The notes: generated by a model from the letters alone, not told the origin. A DNA stretch of 64,000 nucleotides from Macrostomum lignano (GCA_002269645.1 NIVC01001537.1:124001-188000), one strand, 5' to 3'. Shown: positions 6,748 to 54,034, counted from the stretch's first letter. Program-made: numbers and translations.

Positions 6748-9700
6748 TCACTCGTCGCAGTTCAATGAAAAATCGAACGGGGCGAACGATTTCTTGAACT
6801 CCTCGGCCGCGGCGGTCTCCTCGGCCTCGGACTGCAGGCAGTCGCGCCAGTCTACGCGAGTCGGACAGTCGTAGACGTGATGCGAGGCCAGGACGTCGCG
6901 GCCGAAGCTCAACGGAAACGTGTCGAACTGGTCCCGACGAATCGGGCAGAACAGCCGCTCGCCGGTGGGCAGGTCGGCGCAGAAATACGGCGCCCCGGGC
7001 GGCACGAGGTCGGCCAGATCGGCGCCAGGGTGCAGCTCGCGAAGACTCAGCCTTGGCTCGTGCTTGTCGGCGACGTCCAGGAAAGCGGCTTTGAGGCCGG
7101 GCAGGGAGGCCACGGGCACGGGGATGCAGTGCAGCTGGGCGTGGAAGCATTTGAAATTCCGCTCGATGTACACCGGGGCCAGCTCGGAGGCGGCGTACAG
7201 CTGGGCCAGGCAGCGCTTGTAGCGGGAGAACTCGGACAGAACCTCGGCCGGACAGTCGGACAGGCATTTGTGATGTCCGATTGGCAGGGCGATCACGTGC
7301 TGCGGCACCAGGGGACCGCGGGCCAAAGCCAGGTAAGTTGACTTGGCCACGGATACAACCAGCTGCCGCTGCACTTCCGGGTTGCCCAGGCAGAACCAGC
7401 AGGCCGCCTGCTGCTGCCGCCGCTTGGCTTCGCCACCGCCGCCGCCGCCTTCGGATCTCCGTTTCTGACCGGCGTGGCCCGGCTTGCCGGAGGCTTCGGC
7501 GAAGAAGAAACTGCGCGGCCCGGCTTCTGAGGGGGGAGGGGATTGGGAATCCAGATTGGTGGCGCTTGGTGGGCAGAGGGTCTGCAGTTGCTGTCTACAG
7601 CTGACCAGTTGCTGCCTACAGCTGACCAGTTGCTGTCTACAGCTGACCAGTTGCTGTCTACAGCTGACCAGTTGCTGTCTACAGCTGACCAGTTGCTGTC
7701 TACAGCTGACCAGTTGCTGTCTACAGCTGACCAGTTGCTGTCTACAGCTGACCAGTTGCTGTCTACAGCTGACCAGTTGCTGTCTACAGCTGACCAGTTG
7801 CTGTCTACAGCTGACCAGTTGCTGTCTACAGCTGACCAGTTGCTGTCTACAGCTGACCAGTTGCTGTCTACAGCTGACCAGTTGCTGTCTACAGCTGACT
7901 AATATAAACAACTACAGCTGACCAATATAAACAGCTATAGCTGACTAATATAAACAGCTACAGCTGACCAATATAAACAGCTACAGCTGACTAATATAAA
8001 CAGCTACAGCTGACAAATATAAACAGCTACAGCTGACTAATATAAACATCTACAGCTGACCAATATAACATCTACAGCTGACCAATATAAGCATCTACAG
8101 CTGACCAATATAAGCATCTACAACTGACCAATATAAACATCTACAGCTGACTAATATAAACATCTACAGCTGACCAATATAAGCATCTACAGCTGACCAA
8201 TATAAACATCTACAGCTGACCAATATAAACATCTACAGCTGACCAATATAAGCATCTACAGCTGACCAATATAACATCTACAGCTGACCAATATAAGCAT
8301 CTACAGCTGACCAATATAAACATCTACAGCTGACCAATATAACATCTACAGCTGACCAATATAAACATCTACAGCTGACCAATATAAACATCTACAGCTG
8401 ACCAATATAAACATCTACAGCTGACCAATATAAACATCTACAGCTGACCAATATATACATCTACAGCTGACCAATATAAACATCTACAGCTGACCAATAT
8501 AAGCATCTACAGCTGACCAATATAAACATCTACAGCTGACCAATATAACATCTACAGCTGACCAATATAAGCATCTACAGCTGACCAATATAACATCCAC
8601 AGCTGACCAAAAAAAGCATCTATAGCTGACCAATATAACATCTACAGCTGACCAATATAAGCATCTACAGCTGACCAATATAACATCTACAGCTGACCAA
8701 TATAAGCATCTACAGCTGACCAATATAAGCATCTACAGCTGACCAATATAAACATCTACAGCTGACCAATATAAACATCTACAGCTGACCAATATAAACA
8801 TCTACAGCTGACCAATATAAACATCTACAGCTGACCAATATAAACATCTACAGCTGACCAATATATACATCTACAGCTGACCAATATAAACATCTACAGC
8901 TGACCAATATAAGCATCTACAGCTGACCAATATAAACATCTACAGCTGACCAATATAACATCTACAGCTGACCAATATAAGCATCTACAGCTGACCAATA
9001 TAACATCTAGTACAGCTGACCAATATAAGCATCTACAGCTGACCAATATAAACATCTACAGCTGACCAATATAAACATCTACAGCTGACCAATATAACAT
9101 CTACAGCTGACCAATATAAACATCTACAGCTGACCAATATAAACATCTACAGCTGACCAATATAAGCATCTACAGCTGACCAATATAAACATCTACAGCT
9201 GACCAATATAAACATCTACAGCTGACCAATATAAACATCTACAGCTGACCAATATAAACATCTACAGCTGACCAATATAAACATCTACAGCTGACCAATA
9301 TAAACATCTACAGCTGACCAATATAAACATCTACAGCTGACCAATATAAGCATCTACAGCTGACCAATATAAACATCTACAGCTGACCAATATAACATCT
9401 ACAGCTGACCAATATAAGCATCTACAGCTGACCAATATAACATCTAGTACAGCTGACCAATATAAGCATCTACAGCTGACCAATATAAACATCTACAGCT
9501 GACCAATATAAACATCTACAGCTGACCAATATAACATCTACAGCTGACCAATATAAACATCTACAGCTGACCAATATAAACATCTACAGCTGACCAATAT
9601 AAACATCTACAGCTGACCAATATAAACATCTACAGCTGACCAATATATACATCTACAGCTGACCAATATAAACATCTACAGCTGACCAATATAAACATCT

Positions 9701-12700
9701 ACAGCTGACCAATATAAACAACTACAGCTGACCAATATAAACATCTACAGCTGACCAATATAAGCATCTACAGCTGACCAATATAAGCATCTACAGCTGA
9801 CCAATATAAGCATCTACAGCTGACCAATATAAGCATCTACAGCTGACCAATATAAACATCTACAGCTGACCAATATAAACATCTACAGCTGACCAATATA
9901 ACATCTACAGCTGACCAATATAAACATCTACAGCTGACCAATATAAACATCTACAGCTGACCAATATAAACATCTACAGCTGACCAATATAAACATCTAC
10001 AGCTGACCAATATTTACATCTACAGCTGACCAATATAAACATCTACAGCTGACCAATATAAACATCTACAGCTGACCAATATAAACATCTACAGCTGACC
10101 AATATAAACAACTACAGCTGACCAATATAAACATGTACAGCTCAGACACAAAATAGCACCCCAGCTCACCAACTGTGCTGACATCCTTGCCGTCATCCTT
10201 ATACGGACAGTCGGTGACGCCAGCGCCGCTGGGAGTCTGTTTCAGCAGTTCAGCCCGATCAATCTTAGCCAAAGGGGTTAACTGTAAAGCGTACAGACAG
10301 CGCCTGCCGCTGCTAACGCCAGCCAACGAGTGGAACCTGGTCGAGTGCCGCTCCCGTTCCGAGCCGACCCGGTGATTCCGATAGGGCAGCCGTTCGAAGT
10401 CCAGCCCGCTGTCCGAGCCGTCGCCGCAGGCGCACACGTGATAGCGCGGGCGGAGACGGGCGGCCAGCCTGGCAATGGCGGGATGAGCGAACGGCTTGGA
10501 GGCGGACTCCACCGCCTGGCACTCGTCCATTGGTAGCCAGTCTTCGCAGCCAGTCAGAGTGCCAGCTGGCCAGGCGCAGGTTAGCAACAAATCCACGCCT
10601 GGGAACTCTGCGTCTGAGGCTTGGCCGGCCAGCCAGGCCAGCTCAGAGTCTCTGAATCTGCGGGACTCCTCGCCGCGGCTGGTGCCTGTGGGATGGGAGG
10701 GTAGCAACTGGAGCATCGGGAGGGTAGCAACTGGAGCATCGGGAGGGTAGCAACTGGAGCATCGGGAGGGTAGCAACTGGAGCATCGGGAGGGTAGCAAC
10801 TGAAGCATCGGGAGGGTAGCAACTGGAGCATCGGGAGGGTAGCAACTGGAGCATCGGGAGGGTAGCAACTGGAGCATCGGGAGGGTAGCAACTGGAGCAT
10901 CGGGAGGGTAGCAACTGAAGCATCGGGAGGGTAGCAACTGAAGCATCGGGAGGGTAGCAACTGAAGCATCGGGAGGGTAGCAACTGGAGCATCGGGAGGG
11001 TAGCAACTGAAGCATCGGGAGGGTAGCAACTGAAGCATCGGGAGGGTAGAAACTGGAGCATCGGGAGGGTAGCAACTGAAGCATCGGGAGGGTAGCAACT
11101 GGAGCATCGGGAGGGTAGCAACTGAAGCATCGGAGAGGGTAGCAACTGAAGCATCGGGAGGGTAGCAGCTGAAGCATTGGAGAGGGTAGCAACTGAAGCA
11201 TCGGGAGGGTAGCAACTGAACTGAAGCATCGGGAGGGTAGCAACTGAAGCATCGGGAGGGTAGCAACTGAACTGAAGCATCGGGAGGGTAGCAACTGAAC
11301 TGAAGCATCGGGAGGGTAGCAACTGGAGCATCGGGAGGGTAGCAACTGAACTGAAGCATCGGGAGGGTAGCAACTGGAGCATCGGGAGGGTAGCAACTGG
11401 AGCATCGGGAGGGTAGCAACTGAAGCATCGGGAGGGTAGCAACTGGAGCATCGGGAGGGTAGCAACTGAAGCATCGGAGAGGGTAGCAACTGAAGCATCG
11501 GGAGGGTAGCAGCTGAAGCATTGGAGAGGGTAGCAACTGAAGCATCGGGAGGGTAGCAACTGAACTGAAGCATCGGGAGGGTAGCAACTGAAGCATCGGG
11601 AGGGTAGCAACTGAACTGAAGCATCGGGAGGGTAGCAACTGAAGCATCGGGAGGGTAGCAACTGAACTGAAGCATCGGGAGGGTAGCAACTGAACTGAAG
11701 CATCGGGAGGGTAGCAACTGGAGCATCGGGAGGGTAGCAACTGAACTGAAGCATCGGGAGGGTAGCAACTGGAGCATCGGGAGAGTAGCAACTGGAGCAA
11801 CGGAAGGGTAGCAACTGGAGCATCGGGAGGGTAGCAACTGAACTGAAGCATCGGAGAGGGTAGCAGCTGAAGCATCGGGAGGGTAGCAACTGAAGCATTA
11901 GGAGGGTAGCAGCTGAAGCATGGGAGAGGGTAGCAACTGGAGCATCGGGAGGGTAGCAACTGAAGCATCGGAAGGGTAGCAACTGAAGCATCGGGAGGGT
12001 AGCAACTGGAGCATCGGGAGGGTAGCAACTGAACTGAAGCATCGGGAGGGTAGCAACTGGAGCATCGGGAGAGTAGCAACTGGAGCAACGGAAGGGTAGC
12101 AACTGGAGCATCGGGAGGGTAGCAACTGAACTGAAGCATCGGGAGGGTAGCAGCTGAAGCATTGGAGAGGGTAGCAACTGAAGCATCGGGAGGGTAGCAA
12201 CTGAACTGAAGCATCGGGAGGGTAGCAACTGAAGCATCGGGAGGGTAGCAACTGAAGCATCGGGAGGGTAGCAACTGAACTGAAGCATCGGGAGGGTAGC
12301 AACTGAACTGAAGCATCGGGAGGGTAGCAACTGGAGCATCGGGAGGGTAGCAACTGAACTGAAGCATCGGGAGGGTAGCAACTGGAGCATCGGGAGAGTA
12401 GCAACTGGAGCAACGGAAGGGTAGCAACTGGAGCATCGGGAGGGTAGCAACTGAACTGAAGCATCGGAGAGGGTAGCAGCTGAAGCATCGGGAGGGTAGC
12501 AACTGAAGCATTAGGAGGGTAGCAGCTGAAGCATGGGAGAGGGTAGCAACTGGAGCATCGGGAGGGTAGCAACTGAAGCATCGGAAGGGTAGCAACTGAA
12601 GCATCGGGAGGGTAGCAGCTGAAGCATCGGAGGGTAGCAAGGAATTGAAGAGGTGATAAAGGCGGCACTAACCAGCCAAGTAGGCCACCTTGAGCCCAGT

Positions 12701-23229: not shown

Positions 23230-42393
<19,164 letters not shown>

Positions 42394-43364
42394 TCGGGCA
42401 GCCTGTAGTATCCGGGGGGGTCTCCTACGATTGCTTCTTACGAGGTAGAAGAGAAGACAACTATGTTGAGTCTGGCTGAGAGGCTGAGCAAGTCAATGCT
42501 GGCAGGTAGGCAGGCCTCCCTAGTCTTGTTGGCGCTCTGCAGCCAGCCCAGCCCAGCCTGACCAACCGCCTCCTCCATGAGCCACGAGGCCAGTGAGGGA
42601 GCCAGACTGCCGGCTGCGTCAGAGGCCAGAACGAATTTGATTGGCTGGGACTTGAGAGACTTTCTCTCACTGCCGCTGCATGCAGTCCCCCCCGGCTGAG
42701 CAATGACAGTCAAACGGAATTGCATTCTCTTTTTGCGTTTGGCTTTCAATATCAATTGAAAGATCAGCTTTGTCCCTGTGGTGCTGATATTTTCTTATTA
42801 TTACTCTCTGGCTAGCTAGAATAATCCCCAGATTAGCTTTTTGGTAATCTGACGCCGCCTTTGTCTCACCTGAACTGCTAAGCTAGCCTTGTCACCTTGA
42901 GCTAAGCAAGATTAGCATTCGTAATAAAATAAAATGAATTATGAATTAACTTTGGATCGAGGCTAAAATTCGCCTAATTGAGTGAGTCAGCCGGGGTCAT
43001 GTGGGGCCACCAATATTTAATTTGCAATCCCTAAACAAGTAGTTTTTTAGCCCACTAGACAGTGGCAGAAGCGATAATTTTACTAGTAAGTTAAGCTGTG
43101 CTGGTCCTGGTTAGTTAGCAGCTGATCGAAGCTTACACGTTGTAAATAGTGAGTAATATTAGTTAGAGAATAACTTACAGAAAAAATAGAAATACCAAGT
43201 AGACTACTTAGACTATTAGTAGCGGCAGCAATTTGCGTTTTATCCAACCAGCCTGGAGATTTCTTGCTTGTCTTTCAGATGCGTTCACTGGAATTTGCTA
43301 TCTAAATTGACTGCTGCACCCCATTCAGAGCGGGTCGGACGTGAGGGAGCCATCCACTCACAGG

Positions 43365-43730
43365 AGTGAGGTAGGTGGAGAAGGGAGGTGGGTGGAGGAG
43401 TGAGGTGGGCGGAGGAGTGAGATTGGTGGAGGAGTGAGGTTGGTGGAGGAGTGAGGTTTGTGGAGGAGTGAGGTGGGTGGAGGAGTGAGGTGGGTGGAGG
43501 AGTGAGGCGGGCGGAGGAGTGAGGTGGGTGAAGGAGTGAGGTTGGTGGAGGTTCACTCCTCCACCCATCTCACTCCACCCACCTCACTCCTCCACTTACC
43601 TCACTACTCCACCCACCTTACTCCTACGCCCACCTCACTCCTCCACCCACCTCACTCCTCCACCCACCTTACTTCTCCACCCACCTCACTCCTCCACCCA
43701 CCTCACTCCTCCACTAGCCTCACTCATCCA
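43365..43730. repeat. Palindromic pair of 17-bp minisatellite arrays (G-rich arm, then C-rich arm; axis about 43551)
   Basis: (gaggtgggtggaggagt)n is followed immediately by (ctcactcctccacccac)n. Confidence 0.88.
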
Positions 43731-43836
43731 GCAGCCGCCGCATTCCACAATCCTCTACATTTAACAATTAAAAACTAAGTCTGCTCAACACGCAGCTCAA
43801 AAGCACAAGCAGACGTATGAGTATTGTACGAGCTAC

Positions 43837-45166
43837 TCACACAATGGTGTAGTGAGCACTGACGAACGGTTCAGGACAGCAACTGTAAAGAGCTTCAGTG
43901 CGCCGACTGGATGCTCCAGCCAATTCCCACCTGTCATGCTGTTCAAACATCTCCCAGCTGATGGCATTCTCGCCCAGCCGCAGATCCAGCTCGAAGCCAT
44001 TGTACACCCAGCTGCCCATGACCAGCCTGCAGTGTATCGAGCCGTTGTCCTGCCGAGAGCAGGGAGCGCTGAGACTAGCTGGCGGTACGAAGACAACTTT
44101 CGAGTCGTAGTCAACCGTGGCTCGCATTGCGGATTCCTTATCTAACTGGTACTTGCCGCTGCAAAGAAAGCCATTGAAATCAGTGTATGATTGACATACC
44201 ACATATACCTGTAATAGTAAGATAGTAAGAATCTTATATTCACTTACGCGTTGTACGGTCGGACATCCGGGAGCCACAGAAGGTGGGCAGGCAGCGCCGC
44301 CTTCGTGAGGCCGCCGAAGTTCTTTGGGTCCCAGCTCAGCCTGGGGTCTGACCAAGTCTGCAACATTAAATGACACCGAGTACTGCATTCCACACTTTCT
44401 GCTCCATGCCCATTGTGACAGGCACTGCCCCAACTGCTCCGTGCCCATATTGTGACAGGCACTGCCCCAACTGCTCCATGCCCTTATTGTGACAGGCACT
44501 GCCCCAACTACTCCATGCCCTTATTGTGACAGACACTGCCCCAACTGCTCCATGCCCATATTGTGACAGGCACTGCCCCAACTGCTCCATGCCCTTATTG
44601 TGACAGGCACTGCCCCAACTGCTCCATGCCCATATTGTGACAGGCACTGCCCCAACTGCTCCATGCCCTTATTGTGACAGGCACTGCCCCAACTGCTCCA
44701 TGCCCATATTGTGACAGGCACTGCCCCAACTGCTCCATGCCCATTGTGACAGGCACTGCCCCAACTGCTCCATGCCCATATTGTGACAGGCACTGCCCCA
44801 ACTGCTCCATGCCCATATTGTGACAGGCACTGCCCCAACTGCTCCAAATCAACGGACATATTGCAGAACAACGAATTTACTTGCCATTGTGAGCCACACG
44901 TAGAAGCGAGCCCTGCTGCTTTGCACAGATTCCAGTCCCTGTAGCGACACCTCCAGGCTCACAGTCACAGGCTCGGTGGTGTTCCTGCCCATCGGCCTGG
45001 CGATGGCGCCAGCTGGTCCCAGACTGCGCAGCAGCCTCGTCACCAGGCGGTCCTCAGCGGAGCTGAACGGTCGGTCAGTCGGCAAGCCAGCCAGTTCTGA
45101 CTCGCCGCGAACAGGCAACAGGACTGTCGCTAACAATAGCAGGGCTGGCAGAAGAGAATTACTCAT
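43837..45166 (-). CDS. Cys-loop receptor ligand-binding-domain-only protein (AChBP-like / truncated nAChR alpha-type); exons 45166-44885, 44357-44248, 44158-43837; 237 aa
   Basis: Signal peptide; WLTM|TWSDPRLSWDP; loop A LWLPDVRPYNA; loop B GSWVY; loop C YSCCPEPF with vicinal Cys; stop after HYTIV. Intron 1 uses a GC donor (ATG|gcaagt). No TM-coding exon was found before the next gene. Confidence 0.85.
44395..44846. repeat. 37-bp minisatellite (ctgctccatgcccatattgtgacaggcactgccccaa) filling the GC-AG intron
   Basis: Tandem unit read directly. Confidence 0.92.
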
Positions 45167-45599
45167 CTTGCCTGACTGGTTAGTTGCTATGCCAATGTGG
45201 ACAGCTTCATAAATGGGAGAACATTTTTCGAACGTTCTTATATATACATAGCCGAATACAGATCCAGTTGTGATGAGACTGCATACTCGAAACATCCAGC
45301 CTGAGACCGGATGTCTGTCATTGACGAGCGGTGCTTAAGGCCCTATTAAATAAGTTTGACTCGTAAAATACAGCAATTGTTGCAAAAAAAGATTTTCAAC
45401 TTTTTTTTCTGATATTTTTCAGCGCGATTCAGCGGAGTCACTGATGGCTGTGACACATGAGTAGACAGCATTTACTGAAACCATATTCAAACAAGAGTCG
45501 AAAGAGGGGCAATCCAGACGCCAAAAATGTTTCAAAATAAGACAGTTCCGACCCTATATTGACAACTGCTTTTTTAATGAATTCGGATGAGTAGAGGAG

Positions 45600-46110
45600 G
45601 AATGTGGGTGGAGGAGTGAGGTGGGTAAAAGAGGATTGAGGTGGGTAAAAGAGGATTGAGGTGGATAAAAGAGGATTGAGGTGGGTAAAAGAGGAATGAG
45701 GTGGGTGAAAGAGGAGTGAGGTGGGTGAAAGAGGAGTGAGGTGGGTGAAAGAGGAGTGAGGTGGGTGTGAAGTGTGAGGTGGGTGAAAGAGGAGTGAGGT
45801 GGGTGGAGGAGTGAGGTGGGTAAAAGAGGAGTGAGGTGGGTAAAAGAGGAATGAGGTGGGTGAAAGAGGAGTGAGGTGGGTGAAAGAGGAGTGAGGTGGG
45901 TGAAAGAGGAGTGAGGTGGGTGTGAAGAGTGAGGTGGGTGAAAGAGGAGTGAGGTGGGTGTGAAGAGTGAGGTGGGTGAAAGGAGTGAGGTGGGTGCGAG
46001 GAGTGAGGTGGGTGCGAGGAGTGAGGTGGGTGCGAGGAGTGAGGTGGGTGCGAGGAGTGAGGTGGGTGCGAGGAGTGAGGTGGGTGCGAGGAGTGAGGTG
46101 GGTGCGATGA
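45600..46110. repeat. 17-20-bp G-rich minisatellite (gaggtgggtgaaagaggagt)
   Basis: Related to the 43365 array. Confidence 0.9.
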
Positions 46111-46652
46111 GTGAGTTTGAGAGTAGGAGAGTAAGGCAGAGAGTAGGAGAGTGAGGTTGAGAGTAGGAGAGTAAGGCAGAGAGTAGGAGAGTGGGCTGAG
46201 CAAAGATACAACAGTTTTTGTCTTATTCTGTTTCTGAGACGTAAATAGAAGCAAACGAAGAACAAAGCTAGAAATGAGCAGTTACAAAAATGTTTTCTTC
46301 TACTGAGGCTGATAACATTTTCCGCCAGTCGCTGGGATGAAACCGGACTGATTTCAACCAGCCCCGGTTGCTTGAGTTTCGGTCAGGAGATTTAGCACCT
46401 AAAACATTTATTAGTCAAAAATGCACATCTTTACTAAGAGTTTGGCTTTCAAATTGACAAAGAGACACTGCATCGGATCAAGGGGCAGGCAGGCTAGAGT
46501 GAGTGAGAGACTAAAAAATATTCTTTTTCGCAAAAACTCGCGGAGTTAAGAAGGTATAAAGAAAAAATTAAGTGACGCGCAGTAAGAAATGCTGTGTCAG
46601 GCGGTTTTGTCTAAATCAATGAGCATTGGATAATGTTTATGATGACCGGCTC

Positions 46653-47953
<1,301 letters not shown>

Positions 47954-49030: not shown

Positions 49031-51268
49031 TCACTGCAGCATCAATCTGTCAGGTGGTGCTCGAACTCGAGTCGGGTAGCGCCGGGGTGCCTCGTTAGCA
49101 GAGTCAGCCGTGTCTGCCTGCGGCGAGGCTGGCGTGCCGCCAGCGTCAGGTGCCGCGCAGTCCTCGGCCGGGGTTGTGCTGCTATTCGACTCGGCCAACC
49201 CAGCGGGAGCCGCCAGCAGCTGGTCAGCGTGTCGCGCTTGTACGCCGCGCCCAGAATCGACTGTGCAGTTGCGAGTGCCGGCATTGACAATGACACCTTC
49301 GGCCCAGCGGCTGCTTTCTCCTGCACGAGCAGCAGTGCTGAAATCGCGGTAGAGCACACGATCTCCAGGCTGGAACTGGCGCGCTGGCCGCTGCTGCTGA
49401 AGCTGATGCTGCTGTCGCTGTTGCATGGCCGAAGTCAACGATGGTGTCAGGAGGTCCAGCCGGCTGCGCAGCCGGCGGCCAATGAGCAGCTGACTCGGCG
49501 CGGTGCCACTGACGCTGTGCGGAGTGTTGCGATAGGCCATCAGCAGTCGTTGAAGTTGCGCGTCGGAGTGACCGCACTTACTCAGATGCCGCTTCAGCAC
49601 CTGGACGAAGCGCTCGGCCTGGCCGTTGGTCGCCGGGTGGAATGGCGCCGAGAAGATGTGCCGGATGCCGTTGGAACTGACGAACTCAGCGAACTCGGCC
49701 GAAGCGAATTGTGGCCCGTTGTCCGACACCAAGGTTCTCGGTAGGCCGAGACGAGCGAAGATTTCTCGCAGGCAGCTGATCGTCACAGTTGCAATGGTGC
49801 TGCTCATCCTGTGCACCTCTGGCCACTTGCTGTGCGCGTCGACCAGGACCAGGTAAGTGCGGCCGTCCACGGGTCCCACAAAGTCGACGTGCAACCGCTC
49901 CCATGGCTCAGTCGGAAATGGCCATGGCTGTACCGGGGCGGAGCCTTGATTGTGTCGAAATTTGCCAAGTCGGTTCTCGAACACCGCAGCGAATCTCTCA
50001 TGCAGGTCGCTGATGTCGTAATCGGTGGACACTGCGTGCACCTGGGCCATTATTGTCGGCCAGTCCAGCCCAAGGTGAGCCAGCCAGTCTCGTCCCAGCA
50101 GTGCCGTGTCTCCTTTGTCGACTACAAGCAGCGGTAGCTGTAGCTGCTGGGCGTTGTGCTGGACGCAGACTGTGGCTTGGCCTCGCGGATGAAAGCGTTC
50201 ATTGGTGAAGGTTCGCAGAACTGCGGCAGATGGAGCCAGCTGTAGCTGAGGGAGCAACTTCTGCTGCAGCTGCTGCGGCATCAGCGTGACTGCAGAGCCG
50301 GTGTCGATGACAAACTGGCATTCCTGGCCGTTGACGAGCAGCATGACTGTCGGTCCAGCGTTTCTGCCTGTTGGTCGGACTGCGAAGATGGGCACCTGGG
50401 TGTCACACGCGCCTTCGACAGTAGGTGCCATCCGCTCCTCTTGTAGCATGTGTAGCTTGGCCTGCTTGGTGGACTGGCAGACCTTGCGGATATGGCCGAC
50501 CTTGCCGCATGCATGGCACTTGGCGTCCCTGAACTTGCATGAATGACGCTCGTGAGAACCGCCACAGCTTTTGCATGAGCTGCCACCGCCACCGTTGCCG
50601 CTGCCGTTGCCGCTGCCGCCGTTGCCGCTGCCGCCGTTTTCGCTGCCGCTGACCCGATGCCCTCTGTGGTGCGCTGAAGGTGTCACCTGCTTGCGGCTAC
50701 CTCTCTTGCTGACAAATTGCAGATTGGCAACAGACTCCGATGCCCTTTGTGACATCTCCAGGGACGAACGCTCTGCAGACTCCAGCGACATAGCCTTTGT
50801 TTGCAGGGATTCGAAAGTCGGCTCAACGACTTCCAGCAGCTTGGCTCGATAGGCGTCGCTTCGAAGACCGAACACGAGTTGGTCTCGGAGCCGCTCATTT
50901 AGCGACTCACCGAAGTTGCAGTCAGCTGACAGAGCCTGGAGCCCCGCGATGAATGCCGTGAAGCTCTCGCCTGCTTGCTGAGTTCGTTGTTGGAAACGGA
51001 ACCTCGCAGCTAGCTCCGAAGGCTTGGGTGCGAAGTGCGTTGTCAGCAGCTTCTTCAAGTCAGCGTAAGACTTCTGCGCCACTTGGACCGGCTGGCACAG
51101 ACTCCGCAGTGTGATGTAAGCCTCCTCTCCAATCGACGTGATCAGAGTTGCCACTTTTGCCTCATCCTTCACCTCCTTGCAGATGAAGTACTGCTCGAGA
51201 CGCTCTAGGAAGATCTCGGTGTTTGTAGATGGTAGCAGTTGGCCCAGCGTGGGCAGACTCGTCGCCAT
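49031..51268 (-). CDS. Gag-protease-integrase polyprotein, 745 aa, no RT/RH (copy 1)
   Basis: Gag with knuckles CKSCGGSHERHSC and CHACGKVGHIRKVC; protease IDTGS; integrase HVDF / VSDNG / NGQAER; C-terminal FQPGDRV..W. No YxDD motif. The ATG overlaps the PBS. Confidence 0.9.
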   Translation of the reverse strand: MATSLPTLGQLLPSTNTEIFLERLEQYFICKEVKDEAKVATLITSIGEEAYITLRSLCQPVQVAQKSYADLKKLLTTHFAPKPSELAARFRFQQRTQQAGESFTAFIAGLQALSADCNFGESLNERLRDQLVFGLRSDAYRAKLLEVVEPTFESLQTKAMSLESAERSSLEMSQRASESVANLQFVSKRGSRKQVTPSAHHRGHRVSGSENGGSGNGGSGNGSGNGGGGSSCKSCGGSHERHSCKFRDAKCHACGKVGHIRKVCQSTKQAKLHMLQEERMAPTVEGACDTQVPIFAVRPTGRNAGPTVMLLVNGQECQFVIDTGSAVTLMPQQLQQKLLPQLQLAPSAAVLRTFTNERFHPRGQATVCVQHNAQQLQLPLLVVDKGDTALLGRDWLAHLGLDWPTIMAQVHAVSTDYDISDLHERFAAVFENRLGKFRHNQGSAPVQPWPFPTEPWERLHVDFVGPVDGRTYLVLVDAHSKWPEVHRMSSTIATVTISCLREIFARLGLPRTLVSDNGPQFASAEFAEFVSSNGIRHIFSAPFHPATNGQAERFVQVLKRHLSKCGHSDAQLQRLLMAYRNTPHSVSGTAPSQLLIGRRLRSRLDLLTPSLTSAMQQRQQHQLQQQRPARQFQPGDRVLYRDFSTAARAGESSRWAEGVIVNAGTRNCTVDSGRGVQARHADQLLAAPAGLAESNSSTTPAEDCAAPDAGGTPASPQADTADSANEAPRRYPTRVRAPPDRLMLQ

Positions 51269-51543
51269 TGTGATAACTTTGTTAAGCGAGGCAGAAGTGT
51301 GGAATTGCAGGAGTGAGTAAAAGGTGCTCGCTTGAGAGCTAAGCTGACAATATTTATTACTTAGCACTGAGGTGGTGGGTGCAGACAGATTCAAACGCGC
51401 GCATGGGGTGGGGTGGAATAAAATACAATCTCTAAGCCGATCAATAACAACTCCACTGCTAGTGAGTCCACACTACAGTGCATGCAACCTATAGCAAAGT
51501 TCATCGTGTCACTATGTCACATCTCCCCCCTAAGTTAACACCC

Positions 51544-53781
51544 TCACTGCAGCATCAATCTGTCAGGTGGTGCTCGAACTCGAGTCGGGTAGCGCCGGGG
51601 TGCCTCGTTAGCAGAGTCAGCCGTGTCTGCCTGCGGCGAGGCTGGCGTGCCGCCAGCGTCAGGTGCCGCGCAGTCCTCGGCCGGGGTTGTGCTGCTATTC
51701 GACTCGGCCAACCCAGCGGGAGCCGCCAGCAGCTGGTCAGCGTGTCGCGCTTGTACGCCGCGCCCAGAATCGACTGTGCAGTTGCGAGTGCCGGCATTGA
51801 CAATGACACCTTCGGCCCAGCGGCTGCTTTCTCCTGCACGAGCAGCAGTGCTGAAATCGCGGTAGAGCACACGATCTCCAGGCTGGAACTGGCGCGCTGG
51901 CCGCTGCTGCTGAAGCTGATGCTGCTGTCGCTGTTGCATGGCCGAAGTCAACGATGGTGTCAGGAGGTCCAGCCGGCTGCGCAGCCGGCGGCCAATGAGC
52001 AGCTGACTCGGCGCGGTGCCACTGACGCTGTGCGGAGTGTTGCGATAGGCCATCAGCAGTCGTTGAAGTTGCGCGTCGGAGTGACCGCACTTACTCAGAT
52101 GCCGCTTCAGCACCTGGACGAAGCGCTCGGCCTGGCCGTTGGTCGCCGGGTGGAATGGCGCCGAGAAGATGTGCCGGATGCCGTTGGAACTGACGAACTC
52201 AGCGAACTCGGCCGAAGCGAATTGTGGCCCGTTGTCCGACACCAAGGTTCTCGGTAGGCCGAGACGAGCGAAGATTTCTCGCAGGCAGCTGATCGTCACA
52301 GTTGCAATGGTGCTGCTCATCCTGTGCACCTCTGGCCACTTGCTGTGCGCGTCGACCAGGACCAGGTAAGTGCGGCCGTCCACGGGTCCCACAAAGTCGA
52401 CGTGCAACCGCTCCCATGGCTCAGTCGGAAATGGCCATGGCTGTACCGGGGCGGAGCCTTGATTGTGTCGAAATTTGCCAAGTCGGTTCTCGAACACCGC
52501 AGCGAATCTCTCATGCAGGTCGCTGATGTCGTAATCGGTGGACACTGCGTGCACCTGGGCCATTATTGTCGGCCAGTCCAGCCCAAGGTGAGCCAGCCAG
52601 TCTCGTCCCAGCAGTGCCGTGTCTCCTTTGTCGACTACAAGCAGCGGTAGCTGTAGCTGCTGGGCGTTGTGCTGGACGCAGACTGTGGCTTGGCCTCGCG
52701 GATGAAAGCGTTCATTGGTGAAGGTTCGCAGAACTGCGGCAGATGGAGCCAGCTGTAGCTGAGGGAGCAACTTCTGCTGCAGCTGCTGCGGCATCAGCGT
52801 GACTGCAGAGCCGGTGTCGATGACAAACTGGCATTCCTGGCCGTTGACGAGCAGCATGACTGTCGGTCCAGCGTTTCTGCCTGTTGGTCGGACTGCGAAG
52901 ATGGGCACCTGGGTGTCACACGCGCCTTCGACAGTAGGTGCCATCCGCTCCTCTTGTAGCATGTGTAGCTTGGCCTGCTTGGTGGACTGGCAGACCTTGC
53001 GGATATGGCCGACCTTGCCGCATGCATGGCACTTGGCGTCCCTGAACTTGCATGAATGACGCTCGTGAGAACCGCCACAGCTTTTGCATGAGCTGCCACC
53101 GCCACCGTTGCCGCTGCCGTTGCCGCTGCCGCCGTTGCCGCTGCCGCCGTTTTCGCTGCCGCTGACCCGATGCCCTCTGTGGTGCGCTGAAGGTGTCACC
53201 TGCTTGCGGCTACCTCTCTTGCTGACAAATTGCAGATTGGCAACAGACTCCGATGCCCTTTGTGACATCTCCAGGGACGAACGCTCTGCAGACTCCAGCG
53301 ACATAGCCTTTGTTTGCAGGGATTCGAAAGTCGGCTCAACGACTTCCAGCAGCTTGGCTCGATAGGCGTCGCTTCGAAGACCGAACACGAGTTGGTCTCG
53401 GAGCCGCTCATTTAGCGACTCACCGAAGTTGCAGTCAGCTGACAGAGCCTGGAGCCCCGCGATGAATGCCGTGAAGCTCTCGCCTGCTTGCTGAGTTCGT
53501 TGTTGGAAACGGAACCTCGCAGCTAGCTCCGAAGGCTTGGGTGCGAAGTGCGTTGTCAGCAGCTTCTTCAAGTCAGCGTAAGACTTCTGCGCCACTTGGA
53601 CCGGCTGGCACAGACTCCGCAGTGTGATGTAAGCCTCCTCTCCAATCGACGTGATCAGAGTTGCCACTTTTGCCTCATCCTTCACCTCCTTGCAGATGAA
53701 GTACTGCTCGAGACGCTCTAGGAAGATCTCGGTGTTTGTAGATGGTAGCAGTTGGCCCAGCGTGGGCAGACTCGTCGCCAT
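51544..53781 (-). CDS. Gag-protease-integrase polyprotein, 745 aa, no RT/RH (copy 2)
   Basis: Translation identical to copy 1. Confidence 0.9.
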   Translation of the reverse strand: MATSLPTLGQLLPSTNTEIFLERLEQYFICKEVKDEAKVATLITSIGEEAYITLRSLCQPVQVAQKSYADLKKLLTTHFAPKPSELAARFRFQQRTQQAGESFTAFIAGLQALSADCNFGESLNERLRDQLVFGLRSDAYRAKLLEVVEPTFESLQTKAMSLESAERSSLEMSQRASESVANLQFVSKRGSRKQVTPSAHHRGHRVSGSENGGSGNGGSGNGSGNGGGGSSCKSCGGSHERHSCKFRDAKCHACGKVGHIRKVCQSTKQAKLHMLQEERMAPTVEGACDTQVPIFAVRPTGRNAGPTVMLLVNGQECQFVIDTGSAVTLMPQQLQQKLLPQLQLAPSAAVLRTFTNERFHPRGQATVCVQHNAQQLQLPLLVVDKGDTALLGRDWLAHLGLDWPTIMAQVHAVSTDYDISDLHERFAAVFENRLGKFRHNQGSAPVQPWPFPTEPWERLHVDFVGPVDGRTYLVLVDAHSKWPEVHRMSSTIATVTISCLREIFARLGLPRTLVSDNGPQFASAEFAEFVSSNGIRHIFSAPFHPATNGQAERFVQVLKRHLSKCGHSDAQLQRLLMAYRNTPHSVSGTAPSQLLIGRRLRSRLDLLTPSLTSAMQQRQQHQLQQQRPARQFQPGDRVLYRDFSTAARAGESSRWAEGVIVNAGTRNCTVDSGRGVQARHADQLLAAPAGLAESNSSTTPAEDCAAPDAGGTPASPQADTADSANEAPRRYPTRVRAPPDRLMLQ

Positions 53782-54034
53782 TGTGATAACTTTGTTAAGC
53801 GAGGCAGAAGTGTGGAATTGCAGGAGTGAGTAAAAGGTGCTCGCTTGAGAGCTAAGCTGACAATATTTATTACTTAGCACTGAGGTGGTGGGTGCAGACA
53901 GATTCAAACGCGCGCATGGGGTGGGGTGGAATAAAATACAATCTCTAAGCCGATCAATAACAACTCCACTGCTAGTGAGTCCACACTACAGTGCATGCAA
54001 CCTATAGCAAAGTTCATCGTGTCACTATGTCACA

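Follow-up and report, generated by a model that had tools for sequence, protein, structure and literature searches.

Acetylcholine-binding proteins (AChBPs) have served as the chief structural surrogates of nicotinic receptors, and they also illustrate how a receptor domain can be recruited as a soluble neurotransmitter buffer. In the receptors, an FPFD-type motif of the Cys-loop provides the coupling to the pore. AChBPs have variable Cys-loops; until a spider example was added in 2015, molluscs and a single annelid were their only known sources (PMC4569296). The molluscan proteins, from Lymnaea stagnalis, Aplysia californica, Bulinus and Biomphalaria, each comprise a Neur_chan_LBD ligand-binding domain (LBD) of ~210 residues and a putative signal peptide, with no transmembrane (TM) segment. 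The same LBD-only arrangement is found, in phyla other than that of the gene described here, in Capitella teleta AChBP, in CsAChBP of the spider Cupiennius salei and in gene models from amphioxus, a copepod and bivalves. No paper in the searchable literature links AChBP to Macrostomum. Judging mostly by title and abstract, none of the papers listed as mentioning both AChBP and a flatworm concerns such a protein.

Here, we describe a gene of the flatworm Macrostomum lignano that probably encodes a secreted protein made of a nicotinic-type pLGIC LBD only, AChBP-like in kind. The gene is on the minus strand of a 64,000-nucleotide stretch of DNA (hereafter the window). Window coordinates, used throughout, are those of record NIVC01001537.1 minus 124,000; the two sequences were 100% identical over 8 kb. 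An initial annotation of the window had proposed a putatively secretory LBD without M1-M4, in a non-mollusc, carrying the motifs PYNA, GSWVY, YSCC and CSRQDNGSIHC. All four motifs are present where they had been placed, on the minus strand. The host is indeed a non-mollusc, and the residues of the nicotinic binding site are kept.

The window protein has the aromatic box and the loop C vicinal cysteine pair in common with molluscan AChBPs. It differs from them in its Cys-loop, which has nine residues between the cysteines rather than 12 (both loops are shorter than 13 residues and hydrophilic). It differs further in the C-terminal junction of its gene, where a stop codon lies inside a splice donor, and in its flatworm host. 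With nicotinic acetylcholine receptors (nAChRs) of the alpha7 type, the window protein shares the LBD fold and the alpha-type determinants of loops A, B and C. Conversely, such receptors have M1-M4, a C-x13-C loop and the FPFD motif, and the window protein has none of the three.

Gene structure and the ligand-binding domain

The assembly GCA_002269645.1 contains two loci for this gene (L003 and L004), both reached via a neighbouring gene for a 302-aa protein. The second copy, L004, is on NIVC01000624.1, and the reading frame is intact in both copies. In the window, the ATG is at 45166 on the minus strand, as read from the sequence. A TATA-like element, TATATATAAG, can be read directly 80 nt 5' of the ATG (45237..45246) and is a putative core promoter. 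In L004, there is an insertion at this element (tatatacaatataag).

Exon 1 (45166-44885, 282 nt, minus strand) was delimited by translation, by alignment and by an AlphaFold2 helix at residues 37-49. Its translation begins with a putative signal peptide (residues 1-21, 45166-45104). Recognised by eye, the peptide consists of MSNS, the hydrophobic stretch LLPALLLLATVLLPV and the sequence R-G/E, the slash marking the predicted cleavage site; similar leaders align in paralogs. According to the alignment, a 13-aa linker that is absent from paralogs, helix alpha1 and strands beta1-beta2 are also encoded in this exon, as is the loop D residue Trp91 (codon at 44896-44894). Intron 1 (44358..44884) is of the GC-AG type, with the boundaries ATG/gcaagt and ttgcag/A. 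Twelve copies of a 37-bp minisatellite, located by TRF at 44399-44846, take up nearly all of it. No junction other than the GC donor, on which the initial annotation was silent, preserves the frame. A rival GT 4 nt downstream leads to a frameshift and early stops. The same GC donor is found in L003 and L004.

Exon 2 (44357-44248, 110 nt, minus strand) was placed by translation and alignment; it encodes TWSDPRLSWDP...WLPDVRPYNA and has the loop A Tyr129 codon at 44255-44253. In the nAChR genes of vertebrates, this segment is likewise covered by a conserved exon of 110 bp. Intron 2 (44159..44247) has only 89 nt, from gtaagt to tttgcag. Exon 3 (44158-43841, 318 nt) includes most of strand beta10. 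Within it, still on the minus strand, are the Cys-loop C164-x9-C174 (44061-44029), the loop B Trp181 codon (44010-44008) and loop C, Y222-S-C-C-P-E-P-F229 (43887-43864). The exon ends at a phase 2 gtgagt donor (43835..43840) that holds an in-frame TGA (43839-43837). With this 3' donor left unspliced, the product of the three exons is 237 aa long. Beyond the donor, two arrays of a 17-bp minisatellite abut in opposite orientation and form a palindrome of ~370 bp (43362..43730, TRF). The 17-bp unit recurs at 45593-46115, which is upstream of the gene, and at 40964-41142.

The match of the product to its protein family is beyond chance, as the Pfam, PDB and AlphaFold2 results show. Residues 54-234 match Pfam Neur_chan_LBD, the sole family matched, with an E-value of 2.7e-30 and over profile positions 14-208 of 216. 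In a phmmer search of the PDB, Aplysia AChBP and its chimeras were the best matches (5e-28 to 1e-25); human alpha7 matched at ~1e-24. The AlphaFold2 monomer model, for which 136 aligned relatives were the input, has a mean pLDDT of 91.1 and a pTM of 0.84. It shows an N-terminal helix and a beta sandwich, as expected for an LBD. Foldseek placed Aplysia AChBP (Ac-AChBP) at the top, with a target TM-score of 0.86-0.87 and an rmsd of 2.1 A over 208 columns, followed by the extracellular domains of alpha7, alpha1 and alpha9. All 16 of the nearly invariant columns of the family are retained by the window protein.

Residues of the binding site were assigned from an alignment that included alpha7 and the AChBPs of Lymnaea and Aplysia, with approximate reference sequences. 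Every position of the aromatic box is aromatic: W91 in loop D, Y129 in loop A, W181 in loop B, and Y222 and F229 in loop C. Thus PYNA (Y129), GSWVY (W181) and YSCC (Y222, C224, C225) are all part of the product, and the vicinal cysteines C224-C225 are kept. At F229, phenylalanine replaces the second loop C tyrosine; F is also present at this position in 12 of the 63 TM-bearing relatives in our alignment.

The nearest full-length relative is from the same species: Mlig018664/Mlig011179 (the P0002 cluster), of 247-269 aa and 47-48% identity, which also has a C-x9-C loop. The corresponding records, PAA75741.1, PAA79548.1 and PAA85864.1, are uncharacterised and named 'Neur_chan_LBD domain-containing protein'. 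Mlig018664, a protein of 247 aa, is encoded by exons of 58, 185, 110, 318 and 73 nt. Those of 110 and 318 nt are common to both genes. In Mlig018664 one more intron, near the signal peptide, splits the region of exon 1 into 58 and 185 nt, and the donor equivalent to that of intron 1 is a canonical gtgaga instead of gcaagt. Relative to Mlig018664, 13 residues are inserted after the signal peptide in the window gene. The fifth, tail exon of Mlig018664 is annotated from transcripts, whereas the window gene has only a candidate for such an exon.

The 3' end of the gene and the absence of transmembrane segments

The initial annotation had found no M1-M4 exon in the 1.4 kb before the next gene. This holds, and it can be extended to the entire 64-kb window. 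When full-length alpha7 was compared with the window by tblastn, only the three LBD exons were matched and no M1-M4. Similarly, HMMs for M1-M3 and for M4, built from 51 TM-bearing relatives, detected nothing in the six frames of the 64-kb window (best E 0.12). As positive controls, 40-residue segments of alpha7 M1, M2 and M3 scored 2e-16, 5e-13 and 1e-10 at equal database size. The match with E 0.12 was to the M3 region of the profile, at 16792-16619 and 27 kb from the gene; on inspection it was compositional and was rejected.

The next gene on the same strand encodes a 567-aa Ig-domain protein. From its 5' end to its ATG, the GenBank annotation covers 42393..42483 on the minus strand. The annotated 5' end, 42483, comes directly after the sequence ...ctcag, and the ATG (42393-42391) opens a signal peptide belonging to this second protein. 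Hence, only 1.35 kb is left for any further exons of the LBD gene.

In what frame and for how long might the LBD gene continue? Because the TGA is inside the phase 2 GT/gtgagt donor, a message that does not undergo this splice ends at 237 aa. The equivalent 318-nt exon of Mlig018664 ends CCTTGT/gtgagt, an identical phase 2 donor with an in-frame TGA. In the Mlig018664 model, this donor is joined to a last exon of 73 nt, located 1.1 kb downstream, that encodes LDKKRKGKDGKGKGRPRGEEDDD and a stop and is followed by AATAAA. The 24-residue tail so added is charged, rich in Lys, Gly and Asp, and has no TM helices. A second relative, P0005, is encoded by a 906-nt contig (SRR28338166) and is also an LBD-only protein, which ends 11 residues past the equivalent junction. 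The contig is intronless, with 5' and 3' untranslated regions and AATAAA; hence, it represents a transcript.

By analogy, the window gene probably uses its donor as well, to join a short final exon for a tail outside the membrane. The earlier caveat that splicing might continue past the stop is therefore probably right; the Mlig018664 model uses the identical donor, which leads there to a charged tail and not to TM helices. The proposed stop at 237 aa is present as a TGA, in frame and inside the donor. The Mlig018664 donor is spliced in a model derived from RNA-seq, so residue 237 may not be the true C-terminus.

We looked in the window for a homologue of the charged Mlig018664 tail exon and found nothing convincing. 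The same was true for homologues of the tails of P0005 and of P0006, a short M. lignano database entry described below. Enumeration of acceptors between 43840 and 42380 gave several candidate tails, extending 8-47 residues beyond Val237. The most plausible acceptors are at 43212, 43206 and 43173, all of them open in the phase 2 frame to a TAG at 43085-43083. The only ATTAAA of the interval (43021-43016) is 3' of this TAG. Acceptor and poly(A) enumeration thus defines a low-confidence candidate last exon at 43083..43212 on the minus strand, with tails of 29-42 residues beyond Val237. Whether the 3' donor is spliced or the intron is retained, the product of the LBD gene has no TM domain.

The Cys-loop also separates the window protein from receptors. 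CSRQDNGSIHC is hydrophilic and contains no FPFD-type motif. Its length, C-x9-C, upholds the earlier description of a shortened loop. Among the 63 TM-bearing sequences that were aligned, C-x13-C is found in 53 and x9 in only one. An FPFD-like motif occurs in 51/63 TM-bearing sequences but in 9/76 LBD-only sequences. In the LBD-only group the loop varies from x8 to x20, the length being x10 in 16/76 and x9 in 11/76, and the cysteines are absent in 4/76. A Cys-loop that is short and hydrophilic thus characterises the LBD-only relatives and is seldom seen in those with TM segments; a C-x9-C loop as such is ordinary among the soluble relatives. The x9 loop argues that the lineage has long been free of a pore, and against a recent truncation of a receptor.

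We consider it very improbable that the gene is one for a regular nicotinic receptor subunit, with M1-M4 exons situated beyond the neighbouring gene, outside the window or lost to misassembly. Such a subunit would account for a stop placed inside a perfect donor exactly at the LBD/M1 boundary. Conversely, it would have to be reconciled with the lack of any TM-like exon in the 43.8 kb downstream or in the whole window, in searches whose controls worked, and with an independent Ig-domain gene, equipped with its own signal peptide, 1.35 kb downstream. The second assembled copy, L004, is arranged alike, and Mlig018664 uses the same donor for a short charged tail. The hydrophilic x9 Cys-loop, without the motif found in most TM-bearing sequences, argues in the same direction.

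Relatives of the protein and the ligand

Soluble, LBD-only relatives of the protein are widespread in databases. Among the best 150 cluster representatives, 61 are shorter than 300 aa, begin with Met, lack any hydrophobic segment and stop a few residues past strand beta10. Sources of LBD-only sequences, among those looked up, are the gastropods and bivalves Gigantopelta, Babylonia, Ylistrum, Saccostrea and Sinanodonta, the annelid Capitella, amphioxus (Branchiostoma) and a copepod transcriptome (Neocalanus).

The phylogeny suggested in the initial annotation was obtained by neighbour joining (NJ), with a capped distance and 200 bootstraps. It groups the window protein with P0002, P0152 and P0005 in a flatworm clade, recovered in 197/200 bootstraps. 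The nearest neighbours of this clade are LBD-only proteins of molluscs and Capitella, with no support for the deeper nodes. The flatworm clade and the AChBPs of Aplysia and Lymnaea (Ac and Ls) fall within a weakly supported group of 39 tips, 32 of which are LBD-only. Ac-AChBP joined the nearest clade with at least 10 tips in just 25/200 bootstraps. The flatworm clade is firm, but on these data one origin, or several, as in the independent derivation that had been put forward, would fit equally. A profile search with the flatworm clade, at a cut-off of E 1e-10, found no members beyond P0002 and P0005.

Members of the clade differ at the binding site. The loop A residue is Tyr in the window protein, Phe in Mlig018664 and Ile in P0005. 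In addition, P0005 is without both Cys-loop cysteines. Since the loop A tyrosine is lost in the paralogs and the cysteines are lost in P0005, the family may not be cholinergic. A soluble LBD-only protein might instead bind another small cation, act as a toxin decoy, or have a structural or extracellular-matrix role. For a role of the latter type, an AChBP-related, calcium-carbonate-binding protein of bivalves is a model. We regard a product of this kind as possible, if on balance unlikely. The loop A and cysteine changes of its relatives point towards it, as do F229 in place of the second loop C tyrosine and the low identity, just 22-29%, between the flatworm clade and the Lymnaea and Aplysia AChBPs. 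Against this, the window protein itself is aromatic at every box position and has the vicinal cysteines, and F229 has its counterpart in TM-bearing relatives, as counted above.

A related and tentative proposal, which we think unlikely to be right in full, concerns the history of the group. There may be a macrostomid clade of secreted LBD-only pLGIC proteins, separate from molluscan AChBPs. It would have arisen when a receptor was truncated at the pre-M1 intron, where the phase 2 gtgagt donor supplies a TGA. The proteins would since have been drifting off cholinergic function, with the Cys-loop reduced to nine residues or its cysteines lost, and with the loop A tyrosine lost in paralogs. Retention or splicing of the intron would give a tail-less or a tailed product.

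Annotation, the second copy and the proposed function

The GenBank annotation of M. lignano was built from a genome-guided RNA-seq assembly, and transcripts overlapping repeats were removed from it (PMC5730564). This transcript-based annotation calls no gene at the LBD locus in either copy. Since repeat-overlapping transcripts were dropped and the gene sits amid minisatellites, its absence from the annotation is not decisive. None of ten candidate products, namely the 237-aa protein of each copy and eight spliced forms, was present in a collection of 15 billion proteins. A search of 1.84 billion cluster representatives gave nothing above 50% identity except an 82-aa fragment, P0006, and a word-indexed protein search with the 237-aa product gave one weak match only. 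P0006 (UniProt A0A1I8IKX8, M. lignano) is identical to residues 142-207 and is the only public model. Its tail, LQPRRRAHKWSLWKVA, was not found in the window; we deem this old model unreliable.

The coding sequences of the two genomic copies differ by two nonsynonymous changes, G21S and Y183C, and no synonymous ones. Their flanks differ by 0-1%. G21S falls at the predicted cleavage site of the signal peptide, and Y183C is in loop B. With only 2 of 714 coding positions different, the comparison has no power as a test for selection. A comparison of the window gene with Mlig018664 over 223 codons gave a pN of 0.36 and a pS of 0.59.

A further reading is that the gene is a silent or decaying duplicate of an expressed gene of the Mlig018664 type, its frame still open and its splicing or expression lost. 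We hold this to be a minority possibility. That the RNA-seq-based annotation calls Mlig018664 and neither copy of the window gene is what such a duplicate would predict, as is the lack of a matching product in public collections. An intron 1 that starts with GC where Mlig018664 is canonical, and that has a GT 4 nt on which would break the frame, would fit as well, and so would two copies that differ only nonsynonymously and the lack of a recognisable homologue of the Mlig018664 tail exon. Several of these points have a counterweight. The annotation dropped repeat-overlapping transcripts, and minisatellites surround the gene; the GC donor is in a strong gcaagt context; and two differences between copies are too few for a selection test. 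Moreover, both copies have an intact frame of 237 codons in three exons, none of the 16 near-invariant residues is lost, and the aromatic box is fuller than that of the expressed Mlig018664. That pS exceeds pN in the comparison with Mlig018664, and that a TATA-like element precedes the ATG, are likewise at odds with decay.

The reading we favour is a functional gene for a secreted, AChBP-like protein. On this reading, the subunit would be secreted, N-glycosylated at N62 and assembled as a ring of five. Acetylcholine (ACh) or another cationic ligand would be bound at the subunit interfaces through cation-pi contacts. The protein would act as a soluble buffer or decoy and not transduce a signal. 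It would be soluble in both of its possible forms, the one with the 3' donor spliced to a short non-membrane tail and the one that retains the intron and ends at residue 237.

The importance of the gene is limited by the presence of LBD-only models from many phyla in the databases, and by the absence of the window copy from the transcript-based annotation. Even so, the flatworm clade adds a phylum to the range of proteins of the AChBP kind, which in searchable papers comprises molluscs, one annelid and spiders. The stop-inside-donor junction that the window gene shares with Mlig018664 suggests a simple route from a receptor gene to a soluble protein. RNAi works in M. lignano. Transgenesis is also established in this flatworm (PMC5730564), so that the role of an AChBP-like protein would be testable there in vivo.

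Repeats and mobile elements around the AChBP-like gene

A 17-bp minisatellite, GGAGTGAGGTGGGTGGA, is found on both sides of the AChBP-like gene, at window positions 43362-43551, 43553-43730, 45593-46115 and 40964-41142. Shortly after the last LBD exon, the first two of these arrays abut in opposite orientation. The resulting palindrome of ~370 bp could fold back in DNA or in pre-mRNA. Within the gene, a 37-bp minisatellite repeated 12 times (44399-44846) makes up nearly all of intron 1; it has fewer units in the second genomic copy on contig NIVC01000624.1. The genes flanking the AChBP-like gene on each side contain (CAGA)n microsatellites of 300-430 bp (41793-42221 and 47363-47659).

Elsewhere in the window, a 787-aa retroelement ORF occurs as an identical tandem pair (49031-51394 and 51544-53907) and encodes gag-like, aspartyl protease and integrase domains. 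No match to a reverse transcriptase was found in either copy, and the arrangement resembles an LTR element that has undergone deletion and duplication. A CWF19-like gene, with CwfJ_C_1 and CwfJ_C_2 domains, is located on the minus strand (6748-12450); long, coding-looking minisatellites fill its introns and surroundings.

Second copy, database model and a related transcript

Two substitutions separate the second genomic copy (NIVC01000624.1, 12889-14035) from the window gene: G21S, which falls at the predicted cleavage site of the signal peptide, and Y183C, within the loop B motif GSWVY. Cysteine at position 183 was found in no relative in the alignment. The sole public model overlapping the AChBP-like gene is an 82-aa fragment (UniProt A0A1I8IKX8). 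It begins at Met142 and follows the frame as far as EQHDR, where it departs at an internal GACAG/gtggga. Its 16-residue tail could be located neither in the window nor in the second copy. In the related LBD-only transcript (Logan contig SRR28338166_133578), both Cys-loop cysteines are lost (PTDRLRNESRLGY), as is the loop A tyrosine.

Splice junctions and the downstream Ig-domain gene

Intron 1 of the AChBP-like gene has a GC-AG junction, with the donor ATG/gcaagt (44880-44885). Use of a GT located 4 nt further downstream would break the frame. At the position of the GC donor, the paralog Mlig018664 has a canonical gtgaga.

The downstream Ig-domain gene has its annotated 5' end at 42483 (in the interval 42475-42484), immediately after ...ctcag, as would be expected of a spliced-leader trans-splice acceptor. 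Given this acceptor-like 5' end, it is possible that the Ig-domain gene and the AChBP-like gene belong to a common transcription unit. With a second AG, 8 nt further on (exon start 42475), the donor at 43841 would be in frame with the ATG of the Ig-domain gene.

Donor repeats in the paralog Mlig018664

The intron that follows the 318-nt exon of Mlig018664 carries a 38-40-bp unit repeated 20 times in tandem (7073-7857 of the paralog locus, L001). Each unit combines the final 29 nt of that exon with the gtgagt donor. Hence, the real donor is the first among about 20 near-identical donors, and splicing from any later copy in the array would lead to direct read-through into the TGA.
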